Positions 1 through 35,241 of a stretch of DNA of 64,000 nucleotides are shown piece after piece. Positions within the stretch are counted from its first letter, which is position 1; each line of letters starts with the position of its first letter. The notes under the pieces were generated by a model. The model did no database searches. It was not told the DNA's origin and saw nothing but the letters and a program-made list of their open reading frames with translations. Source of the DNA: Obrimoposthia wandeli (taxonomy: Eukaryota); NCBI GenBank assembly GCA_977020255.1, contig CDROCS010001806.1, positions 372,001 to 436,000 on the forward strand, given 5' to 3'. Both the position numbers and the translations under genes were made by a program.

Positions 1-519
1 CACCAGGTAAGAGATACTTTGGTTGCTCAAAATATCAGATCGAAGAGTCCCACACAAGTCAATTTCTTTTGAGCGAGCAGCCCAACCTTTACGCTTATCA
101 TCATCATCATCATAACCTATACTCGACAAACAAGTGTCTTTAGTGTCTGTGCTATAGTTTAGTATGGTTTCAATCATAGCTTTTTGTGCATATTGAGGAT
201 GGGTTTCTACTACAGTATTATTCATTGTTATATCTATGCTTTTAAATAGGGAATGCATCAAGAAATTTGATGGGACCACATTATCTGCAACAGCTATTTC
301 TGTACCATCAGTTTTCGTTACTTTAATTTTCACAAACAACAAGGTATCATTCAAATCTAAGTACTCAATATCTGAACCTTGAATTTTAAACAGAATCTCT
401 GATGTTCTTGTTCCGGTAATATTGTTTGTTGGATATATATCTTCAAAGCTACCATTACTTACAACTACCTGGGGCAAAGCTCGATCAAAAATACATAATT
501 CAGATTTACCACAAGCCAT
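1..519 (-). CDS. Major capsid protein (double jelly-roll, hexon/PY), N-terminal 173 aa, open at window edge
   Basis: ATG at 519, 2 nt after the PZ stop. Manual translation MACGKSELCIFDRALPQVVVSNGSFEDIYP...EYLDLNDTLL...FEQPKYLLPG has no stop to position 1 and matches the element B ORF at 29548. Confidence 0.9.
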   Translation of the reverse strand, partial: MACGKSELCIFDRALPQVVVSNGSFEDIYPTNNITGTRTSEILFKIQGSDIEYLDLNDTLLFVKIKVTKTDGTEIAVADNVVPSNFLMHSLFKSIDITMNNTVVETHPQYAQKAMIETILNYSTDTKDTCLSSIGYDDDDDKRKGWAARSKEIDLCGTLRSDILSNQSISYLV

Positions 520-521
520 TA

Positions 522-944
522 TTAAGCAAATATAGTACCTTGTTTTCTTCGTTTGTTTATACTAGATGCTTTCTTTCTACCACTACCCTCTTGCTTTTTA
601 GTTTCGGGTTCAACCGTTTGTGCTGCTTCACTTGCTTTACGTTTACGTCGATTTTTAATAATTTTAACAACTGTACCAAAAGCTTCCTTAGCCTCCGGTA
701 TGGCTCCGGCAACTTCCCCTAGTGCATGTTGTTTAAGCATTGGTAACACAGATTTGTTGTTCATTATTACATCTTGAACTGTTTTAACTCCAACACGACC
801 TAATCTTTTCAGTATAGGGAATGCTAACCGTCCCAATGTTTTCAACCATCCCGAACCGTACTGTTTACCTACAAAATATGGTAATTCACCACCTTGTTGA
901 TGTCCACTAAATGTCTCAATTATATTCATAACTGTAATGGACAA
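522..944 (-). CDS. PZ-like basic core protein with GG/GSG protease-site motifs
   Basis: QQGGELPYFVGKQYGSGWLKTLGRLAFPILKRLG motif; sits between minor and major capsid genes; homolog at 29174. Confidence 0.8.
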   Translation of the reverse strand: MSITVMNIIETFSGHQQGGELPYFVGKQYGSGWLKTLGRLAFPILKRLGRVGVKTVQDVIMNNKSVLPMLKQHALGEVAGAIPEAKEAFGTVVKIIKNRRKRKASEAAQTVEPETKKQEGSGRKKASSINKRRKQGTIFA

Positions 945-965
945 CTATTTTTGAATACAGATTGT

Positions 966-2135
966 TTATACCTGATCTATACAACGGACATGTATGGTAA
1001 GGGATACTTTTGCATTGTTGGAAAAACTTATTGGAACACCTGCATCGTTTCTAATATTAATTTCAATGTTTGAGATTACATTTGATGCTAAAGGGATATA
1101 CATGGGTCTGTATATTGCGATATTAACCGTGTCTCCTGGTGCTTTATTTTTATCTAACCATATAGATTTTAATAAGGGTATCATTTGACCTCCAACGTTT
1201 ACAGGTTCACACAGACTAGAATACAAGTACATGTGATCAAACTCGTAATTTAATCGAGGTAGTCCAGACCCGTTGCCCGTAAATCGTGATTTATCTAACC
1301 CTAATACATACATTAAACGTTGATCAAATCCAATATGCTCAATTCCATTCTTTAATACAAATTTTATTAGCTTATCATTATCATCAATATAAAATCTTTT
1401 AAATATGACGTCGCATTTAGATTTAATGTATGCTACTAATGCATTTACATTATTATTATTTAAATCTTCTGTAAATACAATTTTCTTGTTGTATGAACCG
1501 GTTTTATAATGCATATATTGTAAATTATGTGCACTGCAATCAGGTCTGATAGACGTTGATCCAAGTAAAACTCCTTTATCATCAGACTCGAAACCTTCTG
1601 AAGTTAATGTATTGAAAATGAATCCTAATTCATTTTTAGCGTCAGCATCCATCTTGATATAGAATTTTTTGTTGTTGACGGATTTTATTAGTACAACATT
1701 ATCCTTTTTATCAATACCTACACCAACTGTGCTTAAGGAAATAGAAAGCTTTGCAATCTTATCTTTAGACGTGACGGTGAGTTTTGATATTTTATTAATT
1801 GTCTTTTTAATAACTTTTGGTTCTGATTTATCACCATGCAATTGCGGTTCTTTCTTTTCTACTTCTACTTGAGTATGAATTACTGATAAAGATATTTGAT
1901 CAGTCTGTTGATTGGAGAATTTAATAGAATAATTAATTTCACTGCCCTTATTTAAAATAACAGGAGTGTTTGTGTACGTAAATTCAGTTAATGCCGCCTC
2001 CCATTTACCATTTAACGTAATTGGATTCTTCCAATCTACAGTGAATAATGAAGCCATATTATTAGGTTGAGTTTTCGGACAACTATTACTCGGTAAAATC
2101 ATATAGAAGTCTCTATCTGGCTTGCTTTGATCCAT
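966..2135 (-). CDS. Minor capsid protein (penton/PX)
   Basis: N-terminal FYMILPSNS...W.AAL.E and C-terminal YLYSSLCEP..VGG..IPLL...MYIPL...I.NIEINIR motifs typical of Polinton minor capsids. Confidence 0.85.
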   Translation of the reverse strand: MDQSKPDRDFYMILPSNSCPKTQPNNMASLFTVDWKNPITLNGKWEAALTEFTYTNTPVILNKGSEINYSIKFSNQQTDQISLSVIHTQVEVEKKEPQLHGDKSEPKVIKKTINKISKLTVTSKDKIAKLSISLSTVGVGIDKKDNVVLIKSVNNKKFYIKMDADAKNELGFIFNTLTSEGFESDDKGVLLGSTSIRPDCSAHNLQYMHYKTGSYNKKIVFTEDLNNNNVNALVAYIKSKCDVIFKRFYIDDNDKLIKFVLKNGIEHIGFDQRLMYVLGLDKSRFTGNGSGLPRLNYEFDHMYLYSSLCEPVNVGGQMIPLLKSIWLDKNKAPGDTVNIAIYRPMYIPLASNVISNIEINIRNDAGVPISFSNNAKVSLTIHVRCIDQV

Positions 2136-3133
2136 GTTGATTCAGAATATCCATGCCACTTTACGAGATATTGTTTATTCTTACCACGGCCTTTAGATTT
2201 TACGACTTCTTGGATACGGAAAAGTGTAGGTTTATCAATTACTTGTAGTTCAGGTTCATAAAATTTCCCTGTTATTACATTACAGTCATCATCAACTATA
2301 GAGTACATTACAGGATTTGCACGTTTGTCTATTTTCTCTATCCTAAACACTTCATCACTCCAATTCTGATCAAAGTTTTTAATAAAGGGGCTACCACTAA
2401 ACTTTGATATCCGAACATAATCACCAGTCTTATGTTTGGGTTTATTAACTTTATCGACTTGATTACGACTCAACCAAATTTCCATTGCATTTTTATCATT
2501 AATATCGACAGGTCTCAATCCGTCTAAACCTCTATGCTTACTGTGATTGTATGAAGTCATTACTTTTGGTAAAACGTCAACCCATCTTTTATTGCCTTGT
2601 GCAATAAAATGTCTTTTTAATCGATCTCTCAATGTTCTATTAAACCTTTCAACTAGGGCAGCTTTGAATTGTGAAACTACAGAGTAATGTTCAATATTTA
2701 ATTTTTTAAATAAACTACCTACATTTTTGTTGTAAAACTCTTTACCCTTATCAGTTTGCACATGTATGGGGACAGTTTTATCAGTCATTATACTTAGAGC
2801 AGCCTCTATATCCTTACCTGATTTAGATTTTACAGGTAATGCACGCGCATACCTTGTAAACACGTCAATACATGTTAAAATATACTTGTTACCATCATTG
2901 ATACTTGCATATGGTATCATTTCCATCAAATCGGCCTGCCATAAATCGTTAGGACCGCTTGTTCTGTATGCTCGAGTCGGGAACTTCCGCTTCATTGGCT
3001 TGTTTAGACTGTATGCTAGCTGATTGCTCAGCCATTTCTGAGTTTTCTTTTGAGTCGATTGACTTTTTAATGATAGTTTGCCAACGCCGCTGTACCCAGC
3101 TGGGTTTTCGGGATCGTACCATATCGTTTCCAT
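2099..3133 (-). CDS. int: Retroviral-like DDE integrase with C-terminal chromodomain-like segment
   Basis: WQADL, QTDKGKEF and ERFNRTL catalytic motifs; C-terminal YLVKWHGYSESTWI. Confidence 0.95.
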   Translation of the reverse strand: METIWYDPENPAGYSGVGKLSLKSQSTQKKTQKWLSNQLAYSLNKPMKRKFPTRAYRTSGPNDLWQADLMEMIPYASINDGNKYILTCIDVFTRYARALPVKSKSGKDIEAALSIMTDKTVPIHVQTDKGKEFYNKNVGSLFKKLNIEHYSVVSQFKAALVERFNRTLRDRLKRHFIAQGNKRWVDVLPKVMTSYNHSKHRGLDGLRPVDINDKNAMEIWLSRNQVDKVNKPKHKTGDYVRISKFSGSPFIKNFDQNWSDEVFRIEKIDKRANPVMYSIVDDDCNVITGKFYEPELQVIDKPTLFRIQEVVKSKGRGKNKQYLVKWHGYSESTWIKASQIETSI

Positions 3134-3184
3134 TACAACAAGTGAATTTAAAATCGATGTTTGGTATGTTATTACCCATTTTGT

Positions 3185-3514
3185 TTATGAGTTTATCAAT
3201 TTTGCAATCAAAGGAGATACTAAAGTAGCAATTATAGGTATTAATGCACCGATAAAACCACCTTTTTGTTTTAGAATTACTCTACGTTTACCAGTTTTAC
3301 TTTTAGTATTCACTAAATCAAGTAAAGCTTTTTGATGTTTTCTAAGGTTATGTTTATGATTACCGATTTTTACAGTACCTTTTGTAATATTAAACAAGAC
3401 TTCAACCAACTTATCAATAACAAAGGGTGGAAATGACTTGAGTATACGTTGTCTATATATGCTTGGAGCCTTGATTAAAGCCTGAAAGTAGGGAAGTATA
3501 GATTTTGATAACAT
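3185..3514 (-). CDS. Small virion protein ending in QKGG followed by an amphipathic peptide
   Basis: C-terminus LKQKGG-FIGALIPIIATLVSPLIAKLINS; decayed homolog at ~27130-27320 (QNGGFIGAVIPVVASIISSII). Confidence 0.7.
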   Translation of the reverse strand: MLSKSILPYFQALIKAPSIYRQRILKSFPPFVIDKLVEVLFNITKGTVKIGNHKHNLRKHQKALLDLVNTKSKTGKRRVILKQKGGFIGALIPIIATLVSPLIAKLINS

Positions 3515-3545
3515 ATTTAATGAATTAAACTATTTGCAATATTGT

Positions 3546-3856
3546 TTATAGTTTAATCCATTTACCAACTAGTTTATTTACACGCTTTTTATCCGACTTC
3601 TTAACCGACTTTCCAACTGCTTTCTTAACAGGTTTCTTCTTTAATGGTTTCTTTTTACAGGTTTTCTCTTTACTGTCTTTACCGATTTCTTTAATGATTC
3701 ATCGACTACTTTACGCTGATGAAGCACTGATTTAATAAGATTTTTAATATGAGCATTCTTCTTTAACATCAATTTGTTATCATTAGCGTGTAATTTATCA
3801 CCCGGTCTCCATTTAGGTCCAACTCCACTAGGCATTGTTTCTTTCATAAATGACAT
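3546..3856 (-). CDS. Lys-rich basic protein interrupted by a 1-nt frameshift
   Basis: ATG at 3856. One extra A in the A5 run (plus-strand T5 at 3652-3656) extends ...KPVK to KKPLKKKPVKKAVGKSVKKSDKKRVNKLVGKWIKL, with the stop at 3546-3548. Confidence 0.55.
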
Positions 3857-3858
3857 GA

Positions 3859-4509
3859 TTAACAAGTAGATAGGCTTTTCTTTTGTTTATATACAAAATC
3901 ATTATTGAAAATATCGGTTCTCACGCGTAAATCGTCTGGACATTCCTGTGTAAAATCTAAAAACAAGTATCCATGAGGGTTAGTTGTAGCATCTTGAAAT
4001 GCGTCAATCAAATATTGCTTATTACAAGGGAAAGCTTGACGGGCAACAAAGTCGATAACCGTTTGATCTCGCGGATTTTTAAATAATACTAGATAATGTA
4101 CATTTAAATTCCGAGTACGGTGTTGACCGCCTTGATGAAAGAGATTTTGAGTGATAAAAATCACTGTTACATTTCTATGTCTAGCTATTTTGGTAAACAG
4201 GTTATTAAAACCCGACTCTTTATTTGCTTCATCAAACAAATCATCAATTACAATGACATCTCCTGAATTTAACCTCTCAGACCATTTATTATCAAAACCA
4301 TTAATAAAATGAATACCCTTCAATTTACCTAATTCTGTTCGTGTTAGACCAGATTCACCTACACCTCCGTAATGCCAGTATATTCTACTAAACTTTTGAT
4401 TAAACATGTTTTTATTTTGAAGTAATTTAGTTACAAAATGTGTTTTCCCACTCCCACTAGGTCCTACTATTTGGTAAACCGCGTTATTTTTAAGTTTTAT
4501 CATCATCAA
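3859..4509 (-). CDS. Genome packaging ATPase (FtsK/HerA, A32-like)
   Basis: Walker A GPSGSGKT, Walker B VIVIDDL, ARH...VIFITQNLF motif. Confidence 0.95.
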   Translation of the reverse strand: MMMIKLKNNAVYQIVGPSGSGKTHFVTKLLQNKNMFNQKFSRIYWHYGGVGESGLTRTELGKLKGIHFINGFDNKWSERLNSGDVIVIDDLFDEANKESGFNNLFTKIARHRNVTVIFITQNLFHQGGQHRTRNLNVHYLVLFKNPRDQTVIDFVARQAFPCNKQYLIDAFQDATTNPHGYLFLDFTQECPDDLRVRTDIFNNDFVYKQKKSLSTC

Positions 4510-4536
4510 TAATAATAAATCAAAAGAAACGATTGT

Positions 4537-4803
4537 TTATATACGTTTTATTAATATATACAACAACAGAGAATTAAAAATTGATGCAGAAAAGGTTATA
4601 TACATCATGTTTGAACGATTAATTTGAACAAATTTTTCAAAATCCTTAATCCGTTTGATATCTCTATAGACATGGGTGCAAACAATTTCCTTTATATTAT
4701 TACGAGAAAGTCCATCAAAACTAGAAAAGTATTGAACTCCATTTATTGTTCCGTTTATAATTTCCTCGACTGCATCATCAACTAATTTATCGTTTTTATC
4801 CAT
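4537..4803 (-). CDS. 88-aa hypothetical protein with C-terminal hydrophobic segment
   Basis: ATG-started ORF packed between IAP and ATPase; ends YITFSASIFNSLLLYILIKRI. Confidence 0.55.
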   Translation of the reverse strand: MDKNDKLVDDAVEEIINGTINGVQYFSSFDGLSRNNIKEIVCTHVYRDIKRIKDFEKFVQINRSNMMYITFSASIFNSLLLYILIKRI

Positions 4804-4821
4804 TTATATAAATCATAAATT

Positions 4822-5721
4822 TCAATTGTTTATATCATGAAATTTTACATTTCTTACTCTCCGTTCGATCAGACATCTGCATACTGGACATGAATGTAAC
4901 ATTCTAGAACATGATATACATGTATTTACATGTCCACAAGGGAGAAATACTACTTCAATATGATTATTTAAACATACTACACATTCAGGTACCTTTAAAA
5001 TGTATGAAAGTATATTTATATATTGTTTTTCAGGTTTCATTTCTAAATTAGATAAATCACAAAGCAATTCAAATAGTGAATTGTATTCACCATATCGCAT
5101 CATTTTATATTTTAAAACAGATTTTATTCTATCTTTCATGAAAAACTTTTTCAAATATCTGATTTGGTTTGTATCCATCAACATATCGAATTTCTCAATA
5201 GTCAAAGGATATTCAATTATACAATCTGTTTCGATTTTCTCAATAACATTAGCCTCATTATAAAGTCCTAAACATTTTGAATAGCATATATCAGGTAATT
5301 TTACATCAATATCTGATACATGTACTTTTCCAATCAATGGTGATGTATCAAAATCGATTTTCTTGTCCATAGTTTCAATTATTGGCACATTTGAAACATT
5401 TAACTTTAAAAGAAATGGACATGTAGGAAAAAATTTCATATGTTGCTTCATTGGTTTAAGATACCATTCCCATTCGGATAACGCACCTTGACAGTATATA
5501 CATTTTACTTTATCGGTTGAATCATCATCATGTTTATAAAATCCGGCTTTAGCTAAATCATTTACAGATTGTTTCCCTTTAAAATTTATAATTAATGATC
5601 TTAATCTTTCACTTTCACGTCTATATTTCCAATGTAAAACTTTCATTCTAGAATAACCTACTTTTCGTCTAACTAAAACATCATCAACAGTTGTATAATG
5701 AAGTATATAATCAACTAGCAT
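4822..5721 (-). CDS. iap: Inhibitor of apoptosis protein (one BIR + C-terminal RING)
   Basis: BIR: LAKAGFY...DKVKCIYC...W...H..FFPTCPF. RING: CVVC...FLPCGH..TC..C...L.SCPVCR. Confidence 0.93.
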   Translation of the reverse strand: MLVDYILHYTTVDDVLVRRKVGYSRMKVLHWKYRRESERLRSLIINFKGKQSVNDLAKAGFYKHDDDSTDKVKCIYCQGALSEWEWYLKPMKQHMKFFPTCPFLLKLNVSNVPIIETMDKKIDFDTSPLIGKVHVSDIDVKLPDICYSKCLGLYNEANVIEKIETDCIIEYPLTIEKFDMLMDTNQIRYLKKFFMKDRIKSVLKYKMMRYGEYNSLFELLCDLSNLEMKPEKQYINILSYILKVPECVVCLNNHIEVVFLPCGHVNTCISCSRMLHSCPVCRCLIERRVRNVKFHDINN

Positions 5722-5762
5722 TTCAAATCATGTAAGAATAAAATTCAACTAAAATTTATTGT

Positions 5763-6259
5763 TTATATCAAAAGTAAAATATCAGTTATTATCAAAGTCA
5801 CATCAAAGTGATAATCCAAATCCTTGAGACCGAGTATGACCACTTTCCCGCTTGCAAATATGTTGACGCACAGAGGATTGTGTTTTGTAAACCTTAAAGC
5901 AGGAAACAACTCAGGTTCGAACATGCATGCAGCTCCACACTTTTGAGACAACTTGTATAGGTTCACCTTCTTACCTAAATCGACAGTAACCGTTACTGAT
6001 TGAATACGATCAATCTTTATTCTAAATGGACACTTGAGCAAAGTTGTAGTAATAGGTTTCTTGCAACCCATTATCCTGCATGCTCCTAATAATAACTAAC
6101 TAACTAACTAACTAACATAAAAAACATACCTGAACGGAAGATTATAAGGGTATAATCCTTACACCTGTGCACGTACTGACATGGTTTCCCGGTTTTGAAG
6201 GGTAAGTGACTGATGTCTCCTTTAACTTTACCTTTATAATTAATATTTGCAAGATTCAT
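5763..6259 (-). CDS. Minimal two-repeat TATA-binding-protein (TBP)-like protein, 150 aa, two exons
   Basis: Exon 1 6259-6130 (43 codons +1), GT-AG intron 6129-6086 (44 nt), exon 2 6085-5763. Spliced product has IIFRSGACRIMG (repeat 1) and FEPELFPALRF...VNIFASGKVVILG (repeat 2), matching TBP YEPELFPGL...LIF.SGKVVLTG. Confidence 0.88.
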
Positions 6260-6360
6260 GATTGAATTGATGGAAATAACCCAATCTATATATAAAATTT
6301 TTAAGCTAAAGATTATCCAATCAGAATCGAGTATGATATATATATATAAGCTACCACTTT

Positions 6361-7035
6361 TGGTATAGAATTCATTATTTTGATATAAACTCTAAACAAA
6401 CTAAATCTCTTAAGTTCGAGAAGCCACCACCAACAAGGCTTACAGGCACAGATGTGGATACCGATGATGATGATGTAGTTTTTATATCAAAACCAAAGAA
6501 GCAAACTATGACAAGCAACAACCATAAACAAACCAAGACTATCAAGATTGAGAAGCAAGCAACAAATGAGGATCTCTTTATTGATGATATAGTCTCTACA
6601 CCTAAACATAAGAAACCGTTCAACAATAAACCATCAGATGTAATATTTGAGTCTAACGATTTGAAGTATACCAAGCCGGTTATGTTTTATAACTGGCAAA
6701 TGAATTTTTTGAAGACTCCAATCATATATGGATTCATGTTTCCGGTGGCTCTGAATAAGTCAAAATACGATTTCAAGATACATAGATTAAATCCGTCAGA
6801 TATTGATGATCTTAACAAAACTTTTGAGTCGATGCATCTCAACATCATAGTTGGGAATCATATAATAATTCGAGCTGATCCTAATCTTTTCAAGCGAGAT
6901 CACGACTTTAATGTTGACAATATGGGAACTGGACTCAAGTGGATGATCGTCATTTCAATACAGGGATACAAAATCAACTGTACAGGTCTTCATAAACCAA
7001 TCTGGAAAATTACTGATGGACAAGTTCGCTTATAA
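6361..7035 (+). CDS. Conserved hypothetical Polinton protein divergent from the TBP-like gene; start uncertain
   Basis: Frame is open from 6337 (after TGA at 6334-6336). Repeated peptide KQTKSLKFEK / KQTKTIKIEK supports coding upstream of the listed GTG at 6454. Two homologs in element B (25420-26352). Confidence 0.7.
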   Translation, partial: WYRIHYFDINSKQTKSLKFEKPPPTRLTGTDVDTDDDDVVFISKPKKQTMTSNNHKQTKTIKIEKQATNEDLFIDDIVSTPKHKKPFNNKPSDVIFESNDLKYTKPVMFYNWQMNFLKTPIIYGFMFPVALNKSKYDFKIHRLNPSDIDDLNKTFESMHLNIIVGNHIIIRADPNLFKRDHDFNVDNMGTGLKWMIVISIQGYKINCTGLHKPIWKITDGQVRL

Positions 7036-7262
7036 TTGTACTAATATATATTTATCGATGTTACTTTGCTTTCTTCAATATAGACTCCTACTATAAACAA
7101 AAACGTTTCTTAAGATAAAAACTGCGATAGCTGTCCGGTTATGCGGGGCAGTCTAACTCCTGGAATGAGGTCGCAGTACTAAGTAAATGAAATAGTTGCA
7201 AATAAAAATTTGGGACGGTCAATTATGTTTAATTTCAAAATTAAAATTTTTTAATTTCAAAA

Positions 7263-7420
7263 NNNNNNNNNNNNNNNNNNNNNNNNNNNNNNNNNNNNNN
7301 NNNNNNNNNNNNNNNNNNNNNNNNNNNNNNNNNNNNNNNNNNNNNNNNNNNNNNNNNNNNNNNNNNNNNNNNNNNNNNNNNNNNNNNNNNNNNNNNNNNN
7401 NNNNNNNNNNNNNNNNNNNN
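7263..7420. other. Assembly gap (158 N)
   Basis: Run of N bases. Confidence 1.
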
Positions 7421-7534: not shown

Positions 7535-7696
7535 GTAAAGTGTCGGTTCTAAAACAATAGCACACAGCCCCCCGAACAAGGCACAAGGAACAAAGCACAT
7601 CTGTATGACTAATCAAATTTCAGATGTGCTTTGTTCCTTGTGCCTTGTTCGGGGGGGGGGGCTTTGTGTGCTATTGTTATAGAACCGACACTTTAC
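7535..7696. repeat. Long near-perfect inverted repeat (fold-back/MITE-like)
   Basis: Arm 7535-7603 is the reverse complement of 7621-7696 apart from a few mismatches and a longer G run; 17-nt spacer. Confidence 0.9.
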
Positions 7697-7699
7697 ACT

Positions 7700-9070
7700 T
7701 CTCGGTAGTTCGTTTGTTTCCTTGTTGTCTTGAGTTTTCTTCGTTGACGGTTTTTGTGAAGTAGGTTTTAGTTAATATTGTTCTGTCTTTGCAGTCTATC
7801 ATAAAGTTGTGTTTTACAAGGAAATCGGATCCTATTATCAGTTGGGATACGCCCGCGATGATAAAATTCCATTGGTATGCTGTATTACTTATAATTAAAT
7901 TCTGTTTTGTTTCGCCGTACGTTTTGATTGTGGTGTTGTTTGCTGCGATGAGGCTAATGTAATGTGAGTGGTATGTCTTAAAATTTTGTTGAATGCATAG
8001 TGTATATGGTTTTAGTGATAACGATGAAATGGAATCTATTAAAAATTGATATGTGGTGTTGGATGGTTGCACCTTGAAAGTGGAATTTATACCGTCTTAT
8101 AACGGTGAGTTTATTCGTTTTTTGAAATGAACACGGTGCTACACATTTATATGGATTGTTTCCGTAGGTTTTATGGTAGTAACACATGTTTCGTTGTGAA
8201 GCTTTTTTCGATGTGTGTGGTGCATTAAATTTGAAGTGAGGTGAATGAGTTATCCGGTGAAAAGGTGGTGATTGATTTCTCTGGTGATGTTCAGGTGCTT
8301 GGTTTTTCTGGTTGAAGTGAGGTGGTTTGTTGTGGGTTGGATGGTAGTTTGAGTGAGGTGGTTGATGTCTGTTAGATGGGGAGTTGTTTCTGGAGTTATG
8401 TCTCTGGTTAATGTTTCGATTATTAAGAGTGATTTCCCTAAGGAGTTTGTTGATGACTGATGGCTAGTAATATTGCATTTTGGTGAGTGTCTTCGTTTTG
8501 TGGTGGGTGGCTGATGTGATTGGTCTCAGTGTGGACTCTGTTATGGTGGATATTGTCAGCTATTTCAGCTATTTTTTGAATATCGATGATGTTAGTGGCG
8601 GTGATGATATATCTTGTGTTTTGTGGAAGAGTTTTGAGAAAGCATTCTTTCAGGATTTAGGAGAAGTTGTGTGCTTGTTGTGGGTCGATTTTAGAAAGTT
8701 GTTTTTTAAGATGTTTGAGGGTTTGTGATGGTGTGGTGTTTTCCTTTTTGGACGGGTTGAGTAGTTGTTCTAAAGCGTTTTTTGGCTACGTTTCCTCGTA
8801 TTTTGTTGATTTTATCTATTAGCTTTATTGTTGGGTTGTGGGGCTCAATATGTCGTTTATCTCTTCCGCTATATTTTTTAATTGTTGTGGCGGGCAACTT
8901 GTTAATGATGTGCATTGTTATTTTTATTTCGGTGTGTTTGTAGCTGGTTGTCAGAATATTGTGTGTTAGGTTTATCCAGTCTATAGGGTTGTCAATTTCA
9001 TCTACAAAATATTGTGGGGATTTTATGTGTAAAGGATGGTGTTTGTTCGTGTCTAGGCATTTTAGATCGA
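7700..9070 (-). pseudogene. Degenerate Ty3/gypsy gag-protease
   Basis: Gag-like ILKECFLKTLPQNTRYI, zinc knuckle CYYHKTYGNNPYKCVAPC, aspartic protease FLIDS...IIGSDFL; many stops and frameshifts. Confidence 0.8.
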
Positions 9071-9904
9071 GAACAGTTTATGACAAAAGTTTATGACGAT
9101 CATCATGTAGATATATGGTCAAAAGATCAGAGATTATGTTAAATGATGTATTAGGTGTAGTGAGATGATAGTGACAATGAAAATGTGAGAATTGAGAATG
9201 AGATTTGTAGCGGCAGCGTTGATTAGGACTTATTGATGTAGTACAAGATATGTTAAAGAGCAGAAGGATATGAATACAGACCTTTAAAAAACAGATAAAG
9301 GACACATTGAGGAGTATTTTTTATTTGAGGCCTTATCAGGATATGAAATTGTTGTTGTAGAATATTGTGGGCCGTTGTAGTGTTTGTTTCTACTGACACC
9401 AATTTGTTGGGTTGGATAATTGTAGGAGTTGGAGATTAAACGAGAATAGAGTGAAGGCGACGAAGTAAACACATTGATATATTTTTTGTATTTCAATTAT
9501 TTTTAACTTTTCAAATTTTCGTAGGGAGGCTACTAATTACATTATCCAAACATTGGACTTAATTCAATTATCATCGATTAGGGATAATTATAATTAACAT
9601 TAATAATAAAAAAACATCAAATACAAATATACAAGTAACACAAAAAGAAAAGAGAGGTTGCAGGGGAAACATATCATAAAAATATATAACAATATATAAC
9701 AATATATATTAAAAAAATATATAACAATATATAATATATATATATATATAATACACATAAACTCATTTTTAGATTCAAATAATATAGTCAACTATAAACT
9801 GATCATTTCCGTTTGATTATTGTCCTGATCAAGGCTTTATGATTTATTATTATTTATTTCAGTTTGTTTTAATGATTTACTTTTTTGCTCTATGATAAGT
9901 TTTT

Positions 9905-11050
9905 AATGATCAACACTTTGGTTTTAAGAATATTCATTCTTCAAATCCTTCTCTGCCACCATTTTATCCTTAAATTTCCTGAATCACACTCTTAAATTTA
10001 TTAATAAATAATAGATGATCAGGAGGATAAATACTAGTGTCAAGAAACTCATCATCAATCATATCTTTAAGTAATATATTTTGATTTTCATTATGAACTT
10101 CAAATAAAAATGAATCAATGTCCATTTGATACAATCTTTATTTGACAATTAAATTGGTTCCTATATTTAACACATTTAATATATTGAAGCTGATACATTC
10201 TCAACTTTGATAGGACAGTTGTATATAGTCGATTAAGACGACTTCTTTTTCATATATATTAAATTTAATTCACCATAGATATTTCGGAACCAATGACTTG
10301 ACATAATTTAACTAATCTTCTATCATTATTATATAGCCGAATATCACTGCTATTTTCAATTTCTCTAATGTTTTACATTAGATTAAGGCTGTTTCAACGA
10401 ATTCATATTAATGTATTCCTTAAACTTTAAAAATCATGAAAGTATTATGTTTTGTTTCTTATTCTCATGAGTTAACAGTAACTTTTAACTTGAGAACTGC
10501 GAGAGCCCTGTTTGATTGGTTCGATGGCTTATTCATCAAGGAAATCATGAAACGGTTTTGGCATATGAAAGTCAATTTCAAGCAAAAACTCTCATGCTTC
10601 CTTAATAAGATGTATCATTTCCCTGGATATGGTTCCAGATCAAATATTCAATTGGTAAATGTTGGCTCAATGTTTAATCATATAAATGATTAATGTCTAT
10701 ATAAAGCAGTGATGTATCTGATGAAGTTTTACAATAATATTTGCTAATAAATATAATATATTCACGAATACCTGATTCAAATATGTTATACATTTCTGGA
10801 AAATGGTAAAATTCAATTTTATTTTCAAAAGATTTGATAGCACCCGACCAACTCAAACTAGGAATACAATAAATATCCACGGCATTCACCTATTCTAATT
10901 TATTTTCTAAATTCTTCAAATACATCACATAATAAATATACATCATGATTCATATATTCCAACATATAATTCTTCAATGTTTGATAATTTAATTTACTGT
11001 ACATTATAATGGTCTTATTATACTTATCATTAGATTCATCACTACCATAC
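9905..11050 (-). pseudogene. Decayed Polinton protein-primed DNA polymerase B fragment
   Basis: EMYNIFESGIR...LLYIDINHLY and FLDTSIYPPDH...GKFKD...LKPKC motifs. Confidence 0.75.
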
Positions 11051-11920: not shown

Positions 11921-12129
11921 GATGAAAATGTTTAATCTTTTCATTTGTCTAATCAGGCTTGTAGAGATTTTATTATGATTTTCTATAATGTAGTTTTGGA
12001 TTATTTTATTTTTGTGTTGGAATTATTTAGTTATTATTTTAAATAAGATTTGAACAAATTTAGAAAATTTATTGAATTTTGAATTATTAATACCAATCTT
12101 ATTTAAAATATACATACACACATACATAA

Positions 12130-26352: not shown

Positions 26353-26596
26353 TTCTTATGATTTGTCCTCCATTGGCGCATTCTTTTATACTAATTTGTA
26401 ACAAAGACATGAATCTCATTGTTTAATATAACTAAAGCATTGATTTTGATTGGACTAAATCCATATTAAAAATTGAAATTGAAAATTTATATCATCCAAT
26501 TATAATAGGTTTGCAAGATATTTACAAGAAATTTGCAATAAAAAAGCACGTTCAGACATGTATAAAGAATAATTTGTCGAAAACAATTTTAGTCTA

Positions 26597-27078
26597 ATGA
26601 AACTCATAAATATAAATTATAAAGGAAAAATAGAAGATGATACTTTGTACTTGCCATTCAATTATTGAAAGCCGAGACAATATGTAAAACATTTTGATGG
26701 ATTCACAGTTGTTATTTTCCCTCAGGTTAGTTTTTATTTTATTTTATTGAGTTCTTTTAGGAAGTTGTCATGTAATGTGATGCAAAACACCATTAAATGA
26801 GTTCAATTTACCATTTGGAATTCAAATCAGCGCCATACAATCTATACAAATTTCAGCTAATCTCGGGAAAGAAATAAATCTTTATAAAATTGCAGAGAAA
26901 ATGAAAGAAGTATGCATGTTTGAAATTAAAATTTTTCCTGCACTCAGATATTTGAAGTTTACAACGCTGTGTAAATATATTTTCCAGTGGTAAAGTTATG
27001 ATATTGGGATTGAGAAATATTTATTATCCAGACACTGTTGGATCGAATTTAGAAAATATATTTTATTACATTTGTTAA
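26597..27078 (+). pseudogene. TBP-like gene of element B, with intron 26726-26760 at the same position as in A
   Basis: MKLININYKGK...KPRQYV...VVIF.SG | GT-AG 35 nt | SCHVM*CK...CMFEIKIFPALRY...NIFSSGKVMILGL; two in-frame stops and two frameshifts. Confidence 0.88.
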
Positions 27079-27129
27079 CTTTTCTATAAACAAACCCGTT
27101 TAAACCTATTGTTTCAAATGAATAATACT

Positions 27130-27320
27130 ATAAATACAGACAATGGAAAACGGAAAAATGTATTAAAGAAATATAGAAAAACTCTTCTAGATATTGCTAA
27201 TGTAAAAAGAAAAAAAGGAAACGAAATATTATTCTTAAACAGAATGGCGGTTTCATAGGGGCTGTTATTCCAGTTGTTGCTTCAATTATCAGTAGTATTA
27301 TAGCTGCGACACGTACATAA
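27130..27320 (+). pseudogene. 3' half of the amphipathic-peptide gene
   Basis: KKYRKTLLDIANVK...ILKQNGGFIGAVIPVVASIISSIIAATRT*. Confidence 0.7.
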
Positions 27321-27369
27321 AGAATTATTTCAAATATCATCTTATGATATGGGTGCTAACCCTTCTTTA

Positions 27370-28160
27370 TCTAAATTAAAATTTTCTATATATTCAAATT
27401 GTTGTAATAGAGAAGATATGGTTCAATCCAAAAGATCTAATTGGCTACATAGGAGTTTCAAAATTGACAAAAAAAACAAAACAGAATTACAAGAAAATGC
27501 AGAAATGGCTGAGCGATCAGTTAGCCTACAGTCTGAACAAGCCGATGATAAGAGGGTTTCCTACTAGAGCATACAAAAGCAGCAGTCCTAATAATTTTAT
27601 GGTAAATGGATTTGATGGAGATGATTCCATATTCTTTTATAAATACGGGATATCGATATATTTACACATGTATTGATGTATTTAGCAGATTTGCTCGTGC
27701 AATTCCAGTTAAAGCAAAGTATTCAATAGCTATACTGAAGCCATTAAAGAAATATTAAAAGAGGACATTCCACAAAATGTGCAAACTGATTTAGGAAAAG
27801 AATTTTATAATAAGCAATCTCAATCATTATTTAAACAAAATAATATAAATTACTACTCTGTGTTTTGCAGTACAAAGCAGCAGTTGTAGAAAGATTTAAT
27901 CGTACTTTAAGAGATCGAATAAAATAATATTTCACAAAAGAAGGAAATACAAAAATGGATACCATTAAAGATGCTGACAATAATATCGTTCAGGGTAAAT
28001 TTTATGAGCAAGAACTACAAGTAATGTCAAATAAACCTAACGTTTTCCATATTCAAAAAATATTAAAATCTAAGGGTACCGGTAAACATAAACAATACTT
28101 TGTTAAATGGCATGGTTATTCAGATCCAACTTGGATATCAGTATCTAATATAATACGAAG
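27370..28160 (+). pseudogene. Integrase of element B (frameshifted, internally deleted)
   Basis: QKWLSDQLAYSLNKPM.RGFPTRAY, QTDLGKEFYNK, ERFNRTLRDR, YFVKWHGYSDPTWI. Confidence 0.9.
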
Positions 28161-28163
28161 TCT

Positions 28164-29160
28164 ATGTATATTGTTTTACCTAGTAACGGATGCCCGAAGA
28201 CTCAGCCGGATAATGACGCTAGTAGCTTTATTATTGCGTGGGAAAATCCTATAAATCTCCAAGAAGAATGGGAAGCGGCTTTAACAGATTTTTCTTTTTA
28301 TTATTCTCCAAGTACTATCAAAAAAATCACATATTTCGTTTACAAAATAAAATAATATTGAAAAAATAAATGAAGTTGAGACTAAAGGAAAATTTTATTA
28401 CAATTGTATAGATAAAGAAGTGAAAGTAATATATGAAAATAACAAAGTCACATTTAAAAATCTATTAAAATTTATTCAAGTTTTTCAAATTACATTTGTA
28501 TCTAAAAAAGAAGCTTTACAATTCGGTTTGATAGTGAACAAACAGTAGCTCGTAATAGACGGGATATAGTCTCATCTAAATCGGTTAGAAAAGTTCCTGG
28601 TAGTGTAGCAAGAGTGTTGTTACTTGAAACGAGAGTAAAAGATAAAGTGAAACTGAAAACGTTTTCAAAAGATTATAAAATAGATAATGAAGTGAATTTA
28701 TGTAAATTTATACAGAAGGAATTTAGTGAATATTTGGATAAATGTGTAACATTAAAAAATTGTAAAATAACGTTTACAGTAAAGAGCAATATAATACGAG
28801 TTTTATTTGATGATAAACTCACTAAAAACCTTGGTTTAAACAGAAATACCTTTGAAACCCATACAATAAAAACCATAAAAGCTAAAAATAAGGCAAAGCA
28901 TTTATATGCTATAAATCCTTTAAATATTTATACTAATTTAATAGAAACAGCGCTTGTAGGAGGACAGCAAGTTCCACTTTGAGAACAATATGGATATCTC
29001 AAACTCAAACTAAAGTTGGGGACGTTATCGGTATTCGTATAGATCAACCAATGTATCTTCCAGTTGCTATATTTTCTATAAACAATATTGAAGTAAATAT
29101 TAGAGATGATTCCGGACAACTAATAGATTTCACGATTCCAAGACATGTTTAACAATATAT
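28164..29160 (+). pseudogene. Minor capsid (penton) of element B
   Basis: MYIVLPSNGCPKTQPDNDASSFIIAWENPI...WEAALTDF; VGGQQVPL; MYLPVA...NIEVNIRDDSG. Confidence 0.85.
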
Positions 29161-29173
29161 TTAAGAAAACAAA

Positions 29174-29550
29174 ATGACGAATCCAGCAATAATTGAAGCT
29201 TATAGTCAAAGTCAACAAGGTGGAGAATTACCATATTTTGTTGGTAAACAATATGGATCCGGTTGGCTTAGAACATTAGGTAGATTTGCCTTTCCTCTTT
29301 TGAAGAGACTCGGACGATTTGTATCAAATTTAGGAAAAGACTACCTTTCATATAAGAACAATAAACTAATACCAACTTTTAAGAAGCATGCACTTAATGA
29401 ACTTGATAATGTTTTACCTGACGTTGCTAATGTGATTAGAAAAGGTAAATCAGATGAAAGCAAAGAAGGTAGTGGATTTTAACGTAAAAAGAAGCAAAAA
29501 TTTAATATAAACAGACGTAAGAAAGTTGAAGGAACAATATTTGCAAAATG
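29174..29550 (+). pseudogene. PZ-like core protein of element B
   Basis: QQGGELPYFVGKQYGSGWLRTLGRFAFPLLKRLG; frameshift near the C-terminus (..RRKKVEGTIFAK). Confidence 0.85.
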
Positions 29551-30543
29551 AGTTGCGCCAAAACCGAATTGTGTAGTTTTTATAAACCTCTTCCGCAAGT
29601 AGTTGTAGATAATGCTTCCTTTGAAGAAATATTTCTAGTTAACTCAGTTTCAGGAACCACTTTACCCGATTTAGAATTTAATATTAATGGTTCCAATAGT
29701 GAGTATTTAGATTTGAATGATACTTTGCTTTATGTTCACTCGCAAAGAATGGATTGCAGAATCTAAATCTTACGAAATGTGTGGGTCTATGAGATTGAAC
29801 TTTTTTGAACAACCGAAATATTTAATTCCCGGTGTTAATGTACATCTTCGTTTGAAACGTAATAAATGGAATTTTTCTTTGATAAACACAGACGTTTTAA
29901 AACCTAGACTTGATATTTTGGATGCAAAACTACATGTCCAAAGAGTTAAAACCGAGCAATCAGTTTTAATAGCACATAATATAGGAACGGCAAAAAACAA
30001 TGCTTGTTATTCTATTAGAGAAACTAAACTTATAACCTACTCTTTAGGTACGGGTATGCAAGCTTTTAATAAGAATCAAAATTTTGATGATGTAAGATTA
30101 CTTAAATTTGTTTTAATTTCTTTTCAAAAAACTGCAAAGTTTCTAGGAAATTATACGACAGATGTAACTCAATTTGACAATCTTAATGTAGGTACAGTGA
30201 CACTTTCAAGAAATATTGATTATCGCAAAACATATAAAACAGATTTCGAAGGTAGCGTTTATGCTCTAGCTTATACGCAATCTATTATTCGAAATTTGGG
30301 TCAACTAGATAAAAATATAAACAATTGCATATTTCTTTCATTGAGTTTAAAAGCAGCTGTCCGTTCTTCACATTTGTTTTGGCACCAGACTTTGATATAA
30401 ATCAATGCCAACTACCAAAGGATAGAAATTTACGATTAGAAATTAAGTTCAATGCAGCTTTAATACATCCTACTACGGTGCTTATTTACGGAGTATTTGA
30501 TTCGGAAATACAAATCAATAAAAACAGAACTGTCATATTATAG
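29548..30543 (+). pseudogene. Major capsid protein of element B (fragmented)
   Basis: MSCAKTELC...EYLDLNDTLL, FFEQPKYLIPGVNV, LRLEIKF...VLIYGVFDSEIQI; three ORF pieces. Confidence 0.9.
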
Positions 30544-30544
30544 A

Positions 30545-30923
30545 ATGAAGTAATACATTTTTTTTTAAAATTTATTAATTTTTATTTATTTCAGTACAAG
30601 TACAAGAATCAGCAGAGAAGGTCCTGGGTGATAAATTCAATGGAGTTTATCCTATTGATATGATACCATTTTTTCAATCTGGAGGTTACATTATCAATAC
30701 TCATACTTTGAATTTACCAGGAGAACATTGGATATCTATTTATGTTAGAGAGTGGACAATAGATGTATTTGATCCACTTGCAACGTATTATTCACACAAA
30801 CGTGTTTCAACTTTTCGAAAAGGACGAAGAAGAGTATTTTACAACAATATACTATACCATGATCCAGCGACGAGAAACTGTGGACATTTATATATTTTAT
30901 GGTTATCGTTGCCAAACGATTGA
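30545..30923 (+). pseudogene. Adenain/Ulp1-like cysteine maturation protease, probable 45-nt intron near the start
   Basis: IINT...PGEHW, FDP and NCGH catalytic motifs. ATG at 30545, GT at 30550, polypyrimidine-CAG ending 30594. Confidence 0.85.
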
Positions 30924-31188
30924 TGTGTTATAATAATAAATATTTATTAAAAACATGTTTTATTTTGAATTATTTTTTTAAACACTACAAAATTAAAATA
31001 TAAGGGTAAAATAATAAAAGACATAAGACGAAATTTTTTTAATACATTTATTAAACAAAATATCACAACGAGATCTGTCAGCAAAGATAAGGCCCAACCT
31101 AAAAAAGTATCGAAATAACAAAAAGTTAGAGTCAAGGTGCCATAGGGATTTGAAATTTAAAAAAATAAACAAAAAAAATGAAAACCGT

Positions 31189-32700
31189 TTAAATTCGGAA
31201 GTGTCCATAAGCCAGGCTAGCCTTCTTTTCTATCCAAAAGCGCTTGTCGTCATTACTACACAAAGCGTTTTTTGTTGATTTAGGGCAATACAGTTGATGG
31301 GCTCTTGAAATAAATCTAGTTTGCTCAACGCTTTCAATAAACCCAGTATCATAAACTTTCCGGTAGGCCTCATGTGTAAGATTGTTTCTTCCCACACCCT
31401 TTGCTCTCATTGAACATGTATTATTAGATGCATGTAAACTGTAGCATTTAGGGCGTAGGAAAATACAATCATCATACAAAACCTGTCCCTCGCTTTCATC
31501 CTTAAATTTCCCGATAATATCCTTAAAACTCATAGAGTGTAGAGGATGGTTAGCGGGATATTTATGGGTATCAAGTAAGTTATCCCTAAACATTGCTGGT
31601 AATAATTGATTATATAAACTAACATTCCTACATTCTAAAAAGAAAAAGTCAGTGTCCCCAGCTGCGATTTTGATCTCACAATTGATTTCTCTTCGATATT
31701 TCTCTAATTCTATATATTGAAGCTCGTACATTCTGAGTTTGGAAATGTCTAAAACCATTTGTTTGACCTATATAACTTGGTCGATCGAGAAAAATACTCT
31801 GTTTTCCTAATAACACTGCTACGAACTCATATGCAATTGTAAAACTACGCTTGAAGTTGTACTTTCTAGTATATGTTATTAGTTTACGCTCATCATTGCA
31901 AAACCGTAGACAAATACGTTTCCGCAAGTCCTCTACAGTTTTTCCAAATATACCTTTTCTTTTTAACTTGTAAAAATCTCGATCGAATTTGCTAGTGGCC
32001 AAATTAAGTTTTCTAGAATTCTTCTCAATATAGACTTTAAACACAAAGTTTTGACTAAAGCTTATAGCACGATGACTTTCGCTCCCAACTTTAAATATAA
32101 TTGAAGAAGCTGCCAATGCACCACATAATTCAACTTGTTTTCATGTGTTAACAATAATTTCTTAACATTTGAATTAGATTGATATTGATGAACAGGTGTT
32201 ACTGGAAGATCATCTAATTTATCATGCACATTGGAGGAATTTTTAAATCAACCTCAACCAAATAGCTGACGTTTGATAAAACTATATCAACAGTAGTCAA
32301 ATCTGTCATCAATTTATTCAACTGTTCCTCATCATAAACCCACTTAAAGTTGGCATGAGGTAGAGGTTGAGTAAGCGCCCACCCATTCAAATTATTAATG
32401 TCAGTGTACAGAATCTACTTGGATTGAATTTTGACAACATGATGTTTGTTGACAAAAGTCATTCCACCGCGTATACCATAATCATAGATTTGATACATCG
32501 CGGGATCTTGCAGTAATTCGATATTAATATTAAGAGTTTTTATTGCCGTTGCTCATGAAAGACCAGGTAAACTAAAGAAATGCATGGGATCTAGCCCATC
32601 TTCTGCTAAAGATTTTACACGAAAGGACTCAAACACATCAGCTAAAATATAAATGTCTAACTTCATATAATAAAGCATATAATCTAGAAGATTTCGACAA
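31189..32700 (-). pseudogene. Protein-primed DNA polymerase B, polymerase domain (fragmented)
   Basis: LADVFESFR, LDP..F.SLPGLS, GIRGG, YTDINNL.GWAL, GIFGKT, GDTD, GKFKDE, LRPKCYS and DDKR motifs. Confidence 0.93.
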
Positions 32701-32719
32701 TTATTCTCCAAAAAGCTAC

Positions 32720-33242
32720 GGGACTCATTATAGTACTCTTAAGTCATCGCCGGGTACAGTTTTGGGCCCCTCGGCAGTCTCGATTGTAGCGGGGCCACCT
32801 TTTCGCCCAATACCCGTAACCGACCGCAGGTCGGTTGTCGGGTACGATTTTTCTTCTTGTCCATGTCGAAGTTTTGAAATCTGATTATTATTATTCAAAT
32901 TTATTAACAAATTTGTCTGATCTTTGATAAAAGGTTTCTTTTTGGCATACGAATCCGTTGTTTCCCCTAGATTAGTGTTGTTTTTTGCCATTACAAGTTT
33001 GTCGATAATTGAACCTTAGCCTGTCCTTATTTAGTCACTTCTGATTTTAACATATTTTCAATATTTAAATCTACATCTACGTTTAATAAAATTTTATTTT
33101 CTAATGGCACCTTAACTATAACATATTTATTATTTAGGTGATACTCTATAGTAGCACCGTTTTCCCTACGTTTCTGTGGTGGGATATTATTAAGAAATTG
33201 GCTTCGCCCCTTTCTTCCTACAGTCGTTGACAAACCTCCACC
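32720..33242 (-). pseudogene. Probable N-terminal region of the pPolB ORF
   Basis: Co-oriented and directly upstream of the polymerase fragments; ...LKSEVTK*GQAKVQLST; no diagnostic motif. Confidence 0.4.
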
Positions 33243-33245
33243 TTA

Positions 33246-34005
33246 TTAAATGGGAAGACAACTATTTATATTAACAGTTGATACTGGTGCTGCTGATATT
33301 GAGGCAATCGCGGCTGATGTAGACGGTGCTGATGAGGCGATGGCGCTTGTATATGCTACATTTGAGGTTGGGGCCACTCAGTATCCAGTAGCTAATGTCA
33401 TTGAAGTTGAAGCTGACATTGCTGACGGGGAAGAACGGGAAGCGGGTGTTGTAGAGACCAATGATGCATTTGCTGAAATAAATATTTTGATTTTTTTTTA
33501 AAATTATTACCTATAAACATCGATGTAGGCACTCGCGATGGGGGAGGCATGGCTACCACAGTCAACGACGGAATCAGTTGTCTCAAAGTATTTCCTGAAA
33601 AAAAATAAAAAATAAAATAAAATATATTTAATTAGAATTTTAAAAAAATAATCAGAAAATAGTAATAAAAAATACCTGATGAAGCTGAATCAACTGTAGC
33701 TGGTTGGAAGTCTTCTTCATTGACAGAATCCATCCAGCTGTCGTCTGTTAATTAGACAAAGTCTGATTACTCGATGGCCTCCAACCAGCTGTTGTCACTC
33801 CCATGAGGCTGCTCTATCTCGAAATCTGACTGGGTAATATTTTCCATCCAGTCATTGTTCGAGTGTTGAGTTGCTTGCTTCAAAACCTCAAAATCTTCTT
33901 GGGAGATGACGTTCATCCACTCATAGGCTGGAAACAGGTTACACATAATCTGAAAAAATAAATATTAATAAAGAAATAAAAATTAAAGGTTCTTACCATA
34001 TTCAT
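33246..34005 (-). pseudogene. Four-exon ORF with W..I...DF repeats and a Ser/Thr/Ala-rich tail
   Basis: Exons 34005-33997, 33949-33676, 33594-33511, 33472-33246. GT-AG introns of 47, 81 and 38 nt with phase-consistent joins; three internal stops. Confidence 0.75.
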
Positions 34006-34852
34006 TATTTCAAATAGTCGTGGATTGAAATGAAAAAAGTGTTTGTTTATATAGTAAATTTTATGCACACATGCTCTTTTCTTATTGAATGAAAATATAA
34101 AATTTATTCCTCTAATGAGAAGAATTGTTTATTTGTTATTGGTTTTATAATATTATTTTTTATATATTATATTCCTCCAATTAAAAGGATTGTTCATTTA
34201 TATTTGTAATTGGATGAAAATTTTATTTTGTAATAATTAATTTCTCCAATAAAAAGTATTGTTTATCTACATGTCAAGTAATAATAAGATAGACTTAAAC
34301 ATTTTTATATTTGCAATGGTCACCTTGATCACGATATGGACAGCAAATATTTCGTGGAATTTTTAATAGAGGATCACGTGAAATATTTAAGGTATTTAAT
34401 CTCAATTTTGGAAAATATTTTTTTAAAGCCTTATACTTTATGCCATCCATTTCATCTAAAACATAAAAATTCCATTTTCAATATCAAAATTAGATTTAAT
34501 TGTATCGAAAATACATATTTCACAAAAATCCTTATGTCCTTCTTCATTTTAATAAATTAAAATAATTAGTTAGATATAAATTAGTAAATTTTTTCTTATA
34601 ATCTAAACTCCTAAACGGGATATCTACATGAAATATGAAATGCAAAGGATGGAAAACATCGCACATATCCATAATACGTAATTATTTTATAATATAATCT
34701 CTATTTTTTTAATGAAAGCCTTAAAGCTTATGATATATTCTTGCATCATTAGACATATATGTAACAAATCCCTTTGTTTATTACGAATTTGAAAAAAAAT
34801 AATAATCAAAATTTATTATAATATCAAAGTACTCCGTATTTATTTTTTCTCG

Positions 34853-35065
34853 TTAAGATTGGTACATATTTTCAATTATCCTATGAATATTAAAATAAAT
34901 TATATTAAATATAAATCTACCTAAATATTTCGAAAATAAATTACATATTTTATCTGCAACAATGTCTGGAGTATCATTTTTTGAGAAATAATTATTTTCA
35001 TAATCTTCCATTAAATCTGGAAATAATTTAATGTATAATTTATCCAAATTTATTTTATCATCCAT
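34853..35065 (-). CDS. Hypothetical accessory ORF fragment in element B
   Basis: ATG-started, protein-like 70-aa ORF; no motif recognised. Confidence 0.35.
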   Translation of the reverse strand: MDDKINLDKLYIKLFPDLMEDYENNYFSKNDTPDIVADKICNLFSKYLGRFIFNIIYFNIHRIIENMYQS

Positions 35066-35241
35066 GTTATAAAAAAATATTATATATAAAATTGTTTATA
35101 TTTAGTATGCTTATGCAAAATATTTAGTCAATTATGTAACACTATAGATAATCAATAAAGTCAAAATAAAAATAATTTTCAACATTTATTTTTTAGAAGA
35201 CCTTCTTTGGGTTTAATATTTAGGATTCTCTTTCTTGCAGC

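Follow-up and report, generated by a model that had tools for sequence, protein, structure and literature searches.

A Polinton/adintovirus-like element of Obrimoposthia wandeli carrying a predicted minimal TATA-binding protein

The stretch of DNA analysed here (the window) is 64,000 nucleotides from Obrimoposthia wandeli (assembly GCA_977020255.1, contig CDROCS010001806.1, positions 372,001 to 436,000 of the forward strand). Its left end contains a compact array of genes on one strand, headed by a TBP-like gene, and a second, decayed copy of the same element lies further along. The features are as follows, with positions counted from the first letter of the window.

5763..6259 (minus): TBP-like gene of copy 1, in two coding pieces (43 codons and 106 codons) plus one split codon, separated by one short GT..AG interruption; predicted product of 150 aa.
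6286..6294 (minus): ordinary TATA box (TATATATAG) starting 35 nt upstream of the TBP ATG.
5759..5767 (minus): TATAAACAA, 46 nt upstream of the IAP ATG; its TAA is the stop codon of the TBP gene.
4826..4834 (minus): TATAAACAA, 31 nt upstream of the ORF88 ATG.
4533..4541 (minus): TATAAACAA, 35 nt upstream of the ATPase ATG.
3883..3891 (minus): TATAAACAA, 35 nt upstream of the ORF74 ATG.
3542..3550 (minus): TATAAACAA, 36 nt upstream of the pX-like ATG.
3181..3189 (minus): variant CATAAACAA, 56 nt upstream of the integrase ATG.
2171..2179 (minus): variant AATAAACAA, 44 nt upstream of the ORF389 ATG.
962..970 (minus): TATAAACAA, 41 nt upstream of the pVI-like ATG.
553..561 (minus): TATAAACAA, 42 nt upstream of the ATG at 519 of the capsid-like ORF.
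4822..5721 (minus): IAP homolog (BIR E 1.9e-13, RING E 6.2e-11), 299 aa, immediately downstream of the TBP gene.
4537..4803 (minus): ORF88, with no family hit.
3859..4509 (minus): A32-type packaging ATPase (Pox_A32, 29.7 bits against a cut-off of 22.8, E 5.8e-07).
3641..3865 (minus): ORF74, with no family hit.
3185..3514 (minus): small protein with an adenovirus pX-like C-terminal stretch (Adeno_PX, E 3.1e-4, below the cut-off).
2099..3133 (minus): retrovirus-type integrase (rve, E 2.6e-12) with a C-terminal chromodomain (Chromo, E 3.6e-5).
966..2135 (minus): ORF389, with no Pfam hit and 8 unnamed metagenomic relatives; by position it may be a virion protein.
522..944 (minus): small basic protein (called pVI-like here), conserved in copy 2.
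1..519 (minus): N-terminal 173 codons of a capsid-like ORF that runs off the left edge of the window (Capsid_N, E 0.0023, below the cut-off), colinear with copy 2.
6454..7035 (plus): divergently oriented ORF193, with no family hit, which shares the 6260-6453 intergenic region with the TBP gene.
26597..27027 (plus): TBP-like gene of copy 2, a pseudogene with 3 in-frame stops and at least 1 frameshift, and with a short GT..AG interruption at the same position as in copy 1.
26561..26569 (plus): TATA box (TATAAAGAA) starting 36 nt upstream of the ATG of the TBP-like gene of copy 2.
26450..35100 (plus): approximate extent of copy 2 of the element (decayed), colinear, in reverse, with 1-6265 but lacking the ATPase-ORF88-IAP block.

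The downstream part of the TBP-like gene is a 102-aa ORF at 5763-6071 on the minus strand. Upstream of it an ATG at 6259 opens a stretch of 43 codons, and the two are separated by 44 nt, which is not a multiple of three, begins with GT as part of an extended GTATGT donor and ends with AG after an AT-rich run. With one split codon the product would be 43 + 1 + 106 = 150 residues. The two pieces were searched separately throughout. The downstream piece hits Pfam PF00352 at 49.9 bits against a cut-off of 22.9 (E 2.9e-13), and it hits 35 distinct solved TBPs in the PDB at E about 1e-12, the best at E 4e-13. Its AlphaFold model has a pLDDT of 89.5 and matches TBP halves at about 2.2 A over about 76 columns, with all 40 hits at E<=1e-3 being TBPs. 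In contrast, the upstream piece has no Pfam hit on its own.

The link between the two pieces comes from their relatives. A protein search with the downstream piece found 76 clusters at 50-63% identity, most of them uninterrupted ORFs of 144-160 aa from ENA, Logan and JGI metagenomes, several of which carry the automatic IMG name 'TBP'. Of the top 150 clusters, 14 are ORFs of about 100 aa that start at the conserved Met. The upstream piece lines up with the N-termini of these relatives (conserved NINY, a Phe, and IFRS), and the downstream piece continues colinearly at CRIMGCKK. Against a profile of 57 full-length, uninterrupted relatives, all of which hit PF00352, the upstream piece covers positions 2-42 (E 1.5e-16) and the downstream piece covers positions 45-144 with its first residue at 44 (E 1.4e-49). 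This leaves exactly one profile position, which is the split codon. Chance is not a plausible explanation for this arrangement. Copy 1 also keeps every invariant residue of the family.

However, because these relatives have no interruption, on their evidence alone the 44-nt stretch could be an insertion. The window itself settles the question. A tblastn search found the second TBP-like gene, 46-51% identical, inside the decayed copy of the element. Its two homologous parts are separated by about 35 extra nucleotides at the same position, again with GT..AG ends. The two copies of the element are only 65-75% identical in DNA. Therefore, the interruption predates their split and differs in length and sequence, as an intron would. 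A word-based protein search with the 43-residue piece, intended to find short read-through ORFs in relatives that share the intron, found no candidates, although such a blank says little.

The architecture is that of a TBP with a reduced first repeat. A relative of 146 aa (P0004), which is 62-63% identical to both pieces, models at pLDDT 95.9 and pTM 0.84. All 44 of its PDB matches at E<=1e-3 are TBPs, aligning over about 170 columns of the whole core with TMq 0.71-0.78, and Pfam finds two stretches in it. The predicted two-repeat saddle therefore rests on this relative and on the downstream piece, which folds as a TBP half. In the model of the relative the first half has four strands and no helix of four or more residues, so that the strand-helix-strands-helix layout is absent from repeat 1, whereas the second half has it in full. 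Profile-profile comparison with a canonical TBP (hhalign, probability 98.1%) aligns strands 3-5 of repeat 1 and all of repeat 2, with a 13-residue deletion where helix H2 of repeat 1 lies. The internal repeat signal is limited to the FxSGK hairpin, which is present in both repeats. A HMMER search of the PDB with the family profile aligns only the second half, so evidence for the first half comes from hhalign, from Pfam on the relative and from the fold. There is no N-terminal tail, because the relatives start 1-2 residues before the conserved NINY.

Repeat 2 is complete and keeps both intercalating Phe and the acidic stirrup residues. F60 and F76 of the downstream piece align with F148 and F165 of Arabidopsis TBP, which are the two intercalating positions of that repeat. 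E-P-E-L in the stirrup aligns with E144, P145, E146 and L147 of Arabidopsis TBP (E56, E58 and L59 of the piece align with E144, E146 and L147) and is nearly invariant in the family. In the TBP-TFIIB-DNA structures these residues contact TFIIB. The second Phe of repeat 1 also aligns. The first is not alignable, but a nearly invariant Phe sits in the segment after strand 1 and may stand in for it. An observation that does not fit so easily is that several DNA-facing positions differ from cellular TBP. For example, Ser replaces the conserved Asn of strand 1 of repeat 2 and Leu replaces the Thr of strand 5, so recognition of any particular DNA sequence remains an inference.

The initial annotation of this locus proposed a hidden first exon, a 150-aa product with both TBP half-repeats, a shortened repeat 1 and no N-terminal tail, and that observation is confirmed. 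Its interpretation is only partly supported. The description of the gene as Polinton-encoded holds up, but two points need correcting. First, the annotation was not aware of any earlier description, yet the gene is not wholly undescribed: a 'TBP' gene, which may be of the same family, is labelled in the Fig. 5 legend of Starrett et al., 2021 (PMC8502044), in maps of MELD viruses with adintovirus-like PolB, and automatic IMG names exist. Second, the annotation held that repeat 1 keeps only its second Phe, whereas the nearly invariant Phe mentioned above means that the first may not have been lost. The annotation also offered two functions, a promoter-recognition factor of the element's own or a dominant-negative mimic that redirects host Pol II. 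Sequence does not decide between them, although the shared motif described below favors the first.

The gene belongs to the element by position. It sits 41 nt upstream of the BIR-RING IAP gene in the same-strand array with the ATPase and the integrase, and it occupies the same place in copy 2. The integrase and the A32-type ATPase are both features of Polintons/Mavericks. Other hallmarks gave weaker signals. The polymerase of copy 1 would lie beyond the window edge, and decayed pieces elsewhere give only DNA_pol_B_2 at E 0.029 and nothing in PDB or NCBIfam. For the adenain/Ulp1-type cysteine protease, a piece of copy 2 gives Peptidase_C48 at E 0.014, below the cut-off. For the double jelly-roll major capsid protein and the penton protein there is only the Capsid_N match below the cut-off in the ORF cut by the window edge. 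No convincing pair of terminal inverted repeats flanks copy 2; one end of copy 1 lies outside the window and the other runs into an N run (an N run occupies 7263-7420). IAP homologs and pX-like proteins are features that Starrett et al. report for adintoviruses; here the IAP is clear, whereas the pX-like match is below the cut-off. There were no Rfam hits and no tRNAs, and Pfam on other large ORFs found only a Band_7/SPFH gene.

A further finding, which is new here, concerns the sequences upstream of the genes. TATAWA occurs 25-50 nt upstream of the start codon in 7 of 9 genes, against a background of 6.5% for random points (P about 1.6e-7), and the sequences share an extended motif, (T)ATAAACAA. 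Exact TATAAACAA occurs 17 times in the window against 3.2 expected, a count reached by 0 of 100 shuffles. Seven of these sites are in copy 1, all on the coding strand. When one-base variants are counted, all nine non-TBP genes of copy 1 have the motif 31-56 nt upstream of the ATG (mean 40.7, sd 7.5), whereas the distance to the previous stop codon is far more variable (sd 45.5). In the whole window, arrangements of motif, then ATG, then ORF occur only inside the element copies. The TBP gene is the exception, being the only one in the block without the shared motif and having an ordinary TATA box instead, in both copies.

What might a virus-like element do with a TBP of its own? The best explanation, to which we would give a probability of about 0.5, is that the gene encodes a 150-residue minimal TBP that belongs to a Polinton/adintovirus-like integrated virus and is not a host gene. 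Our analysis establishes the TBP fold (to the extent described above), the colinearity of the two coding pieces with uninterrupted relatives, the intron position shared with a second copy, the synteny in two diverged copies and the motif statistics. Expression, splicing, DNA binding, recruitment and timing are all inferred from sequence. In this view the TBP gene, being first in the block and behind an ordinary TATA box, would be expressed first by the host's TBP and RNA polymerase II. After splicing, the product would bind the variant TATA-like motif (T)ATAAACAA found about 35-45 nt upstream of the ATG of every other gene in the block. It would use its intact second repeat, with both intercalating Phe and the acidic stirrup, to recruit host TFIIB and Pol II. 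Both helices of repeat 1 are missing, and in cellular TBP these form half of the convex surface used by regulators and TFIID/TFIIA-type partners, so their loss would make the factor independent of host TBP regulation. However, the motif contains a perfect forkhead-type core and a TATAAA poly(A)-signal variant, both copies carry the gene and the motif together and so offer no test of their co-occurrence, and the element sits among decayed copies and may be silent.

One alternative, unlikely but not excluded, is that the protein is a working TBP-like factor but the motif is not its target. The motif would then be read by a host factor (host TBP or a forkhead-type protein), or it would serve as a poly(A)/gene-end signal in a tightly packed array. 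ATAAACA fits the forkhead core, and papers retrieved with the motif string concern FoxF/Biniou targets. TATAAA is a minor poly(A)-signal variant, and in four of nine cases the TAA in the motif is the stop codon of the upstream gene, so a gene-end role cannot be excluded. Nevertheless, the poly(A) reading ranks lower because the motif is positioned relative to the next start codon and not the previous stop. The distance to that stop ranges from 93 nt after it to 78 nt before it, and in three cases a poly(A) site there would cut inside or at the very end of the upstream coding region.

About as unlikely is a decoy, in which the minimal TBP competes with host TBP for TATA boxes or for TFIIB without assembling a productive complex. 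It would then damp or redirect host transcription rather than activate the genes of the element. The retained Phe and stirrup residues, the loss of half of the convex partner surface and the absence of an N-terminal tail are all compatible with this, and sequence does not exclude it. However, it does not explain why a single motif sits at a fixed distance upstream of every other gene, or why the TBP gene alone has a different TATA box.

Less likely still is a dead gene, in which the interruption is a disabling insertion in an old endogenous element and no full-length protein is made from this copy. The uninterrupted relatives lack it, the surrounding region is full of decayed element copies and the TBP-like gene of copy 2 is a pseudogene. 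Against this are the GT..AG ends with an extended donor, the interruption of different length and sequence at the same position in the diverged copy, the fact that all ten ORFs of copy 1 are open and the retention of all invariant family residues. Finally, a host TBP-related gene or recent host capture merely lying next to the element, to which the cellular nature of the TBP family, the intron and the ordinary TATA box might point, can be rejected as very unlikely because the gene is only 22-35% identical to any solved cellular TBP (with archaeal and microsporidian rather than animal TBPs scoring best), is 50-63% identical to metagenomic proteins of about 150 aa, lies 41 nt from the next element gene on the same strand and is syntenic in copy 2.

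How does this compare with other TBPs? The cellular TBP core, eukaryotic and archaeal, shares the saddle fold (seen here in the model of the relative), the complete repeat 2 and the FxSGK hairpin, but is about 180 aa against about 150 here and has the helices that repeat 1 lacks. TRF2/TLF of animals is likewise a divergent TBP paralog used at a subset of promoters, but it lacks the intercalating Phe and is not known to bind TATA, whereas this protein keeps at least three of the four; no TRF2 came back as a named hit. Giant viruses (Nucleocytoviricota) encode TBP-fold proteins that are the best matches in the viral structure library, and TBP genes are mentioned for mirusviruses (PMC10132985). 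Those proteins are 186-550 aa, at most 19% identical, and belong to viruses with large transcription gene sets, many with their own RNA polymerase, whereas here the genome is small and no polymerase subunit is seen. The proposed mechanism resembles that of beta- and gammaherpesviruses, in which a viral TBP-like factor (the BcRF1/UL87/ORF24 class) is drawn to a TATT motif at late promoters and uses host Pol II (PMC4893493; PMC7162547). The likeness is one of proposed mechanism and not of family, because there is no sequence relationship, BcRF1 and U58 are only weak fold matches (BcRF1 E 8.5e-3), and the herpesviral proteins are much larger and act in a six-protein complex. For Polinton-related midsize dsDNA viruses, the legend in Starrett et al. 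stands in a section on non-animal datasets and gives a label only, with no description of architecture, intron, family or promoters. In the literature searched, no paper links Polintons, adintoviruses or Polinton-like viruses with a characterised TBP. What is added here is an architecture, a family and a candidate target motif.

A more far-reaching reading, which is possible but more doubtful than not, is that viruses of this lineage carry a self-contained transcription-initiation code. This would consist of a minimal TBP that has shed the regulatory half of its upper surface and a dedicated variant TATA motif about 35-45 nt before the start codon of every other gene, with the TBP gene, behind its host-type TATA box, acting as the switch. 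It would be a small-genome counterpart of the herpesvirus late-gene system, in a virus group thought to be near the root of many eukaryotic dsDNA viruses.

Polintons are usually assumed to rely entirely on the host for transcription, and their core gene set contains no transcription factor. The family described here is diverse in metagenomes (60 clusters at 50% identity with E<=1e-30, on contigs up to 22 kb) yet has not been discussed in the literature we could search. The contigs that encode family members P0033, P0224 and P0024 are 16-22 kb long. This lineage carries a conserved, structurally pared-down TBP together with one promoter-like motif in front of each other gene of the block. It would provide a natural minimal TBP for asking which parts of the saddle are needed for DNA and TFIIB binding, and it would make the temporal programme of these elements directly testable from expression data. 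Above all, it would show that even 15-25 kb nuclear DNA viruses can bring their own promoter-recognition factor.

The element bearing the TBP-like gene is not alone in the window. A second, decayed copy lies in the opposite orientation and is 65-75% identical to it in DNA. This copy lacks the ATPase-ORF88-IAP block, but it carries a broken TBP-like gene, integrase pieces, an ORF389 homolog, a capsid-like region, a protease-like piece and polymerase-like pieces. In the first copy, by contrast, an intact inhibitor-of-apoptosis homolog lies directly downstream of the TBP-like gene. IAP homologs are already reported in adintoviruses (PMC8502044). Two further integrase-like fragments belong to related elements, and the region looks like a cluster of nested or adjacent element remnants. 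Perhaps a third element is the source of some decayed pieces that have a family-B polymerase signal, although this signal is weak (DNA_pol_B_2, E 0.029). The positions are as follows.

26450-35100 (approximate): second, decayed copy of the element.
4822-5721, minus strand: intact BIR+RING inhibitor-of-apoptosis homolog.
12125-12702, minus strand, and 24021-24892, minus strand: two integrase-like fragments of related elements.
9970-11100, minus strand: decayed pieces with a weak family-B polymerase signal.

The right side of the first copy is cut off by an N run at 7263-7420. Just before this run, downstream of ORF193, there is one TATAAACAA on the plus strand (7092-7100). This suggests another plus-strand gene of the element, one that cannot be read. 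Just beyond the run are ORFs (7677-8187, minus strand) that were read by eye as a retrotransposon-type aspartic protease region. However, a Pfam search found nothing for the ORF at 7677-8072.

Other features of the window were also recorded. Two ORFs about 3 kb apart (47859-48326 and 51232-51876, minus strand) have Band_7/SPFH domain matches and are probably exons of a host gene with a long intron. A 675-aa open reading frame (55817-57844, minus strand) has no Pfam match. In addition, GC skew measured in 2-kb bins is strongly positive at 8001-10000 (0.39) and at 52001-54000 (0.31).

One aspect of the relatives bears on the interruption in the TBP-like gene. Of the top 150 clusters of the family, 14 are ORFs of about 100 aa (range 103-223 aa) that start exactly at the conserved Met where the 102-aa ORF of the window starts. 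These are the clusters of proteins P0017, P0117, P0119, P0126, P0137, P0139, P0141, P0143, P0072, P0153, P0167, P0169, P0171 and P0182. The shared start could mean that the interruption is common in relatives. However, two of these clusters also contain full-length members of 153-154 aa.
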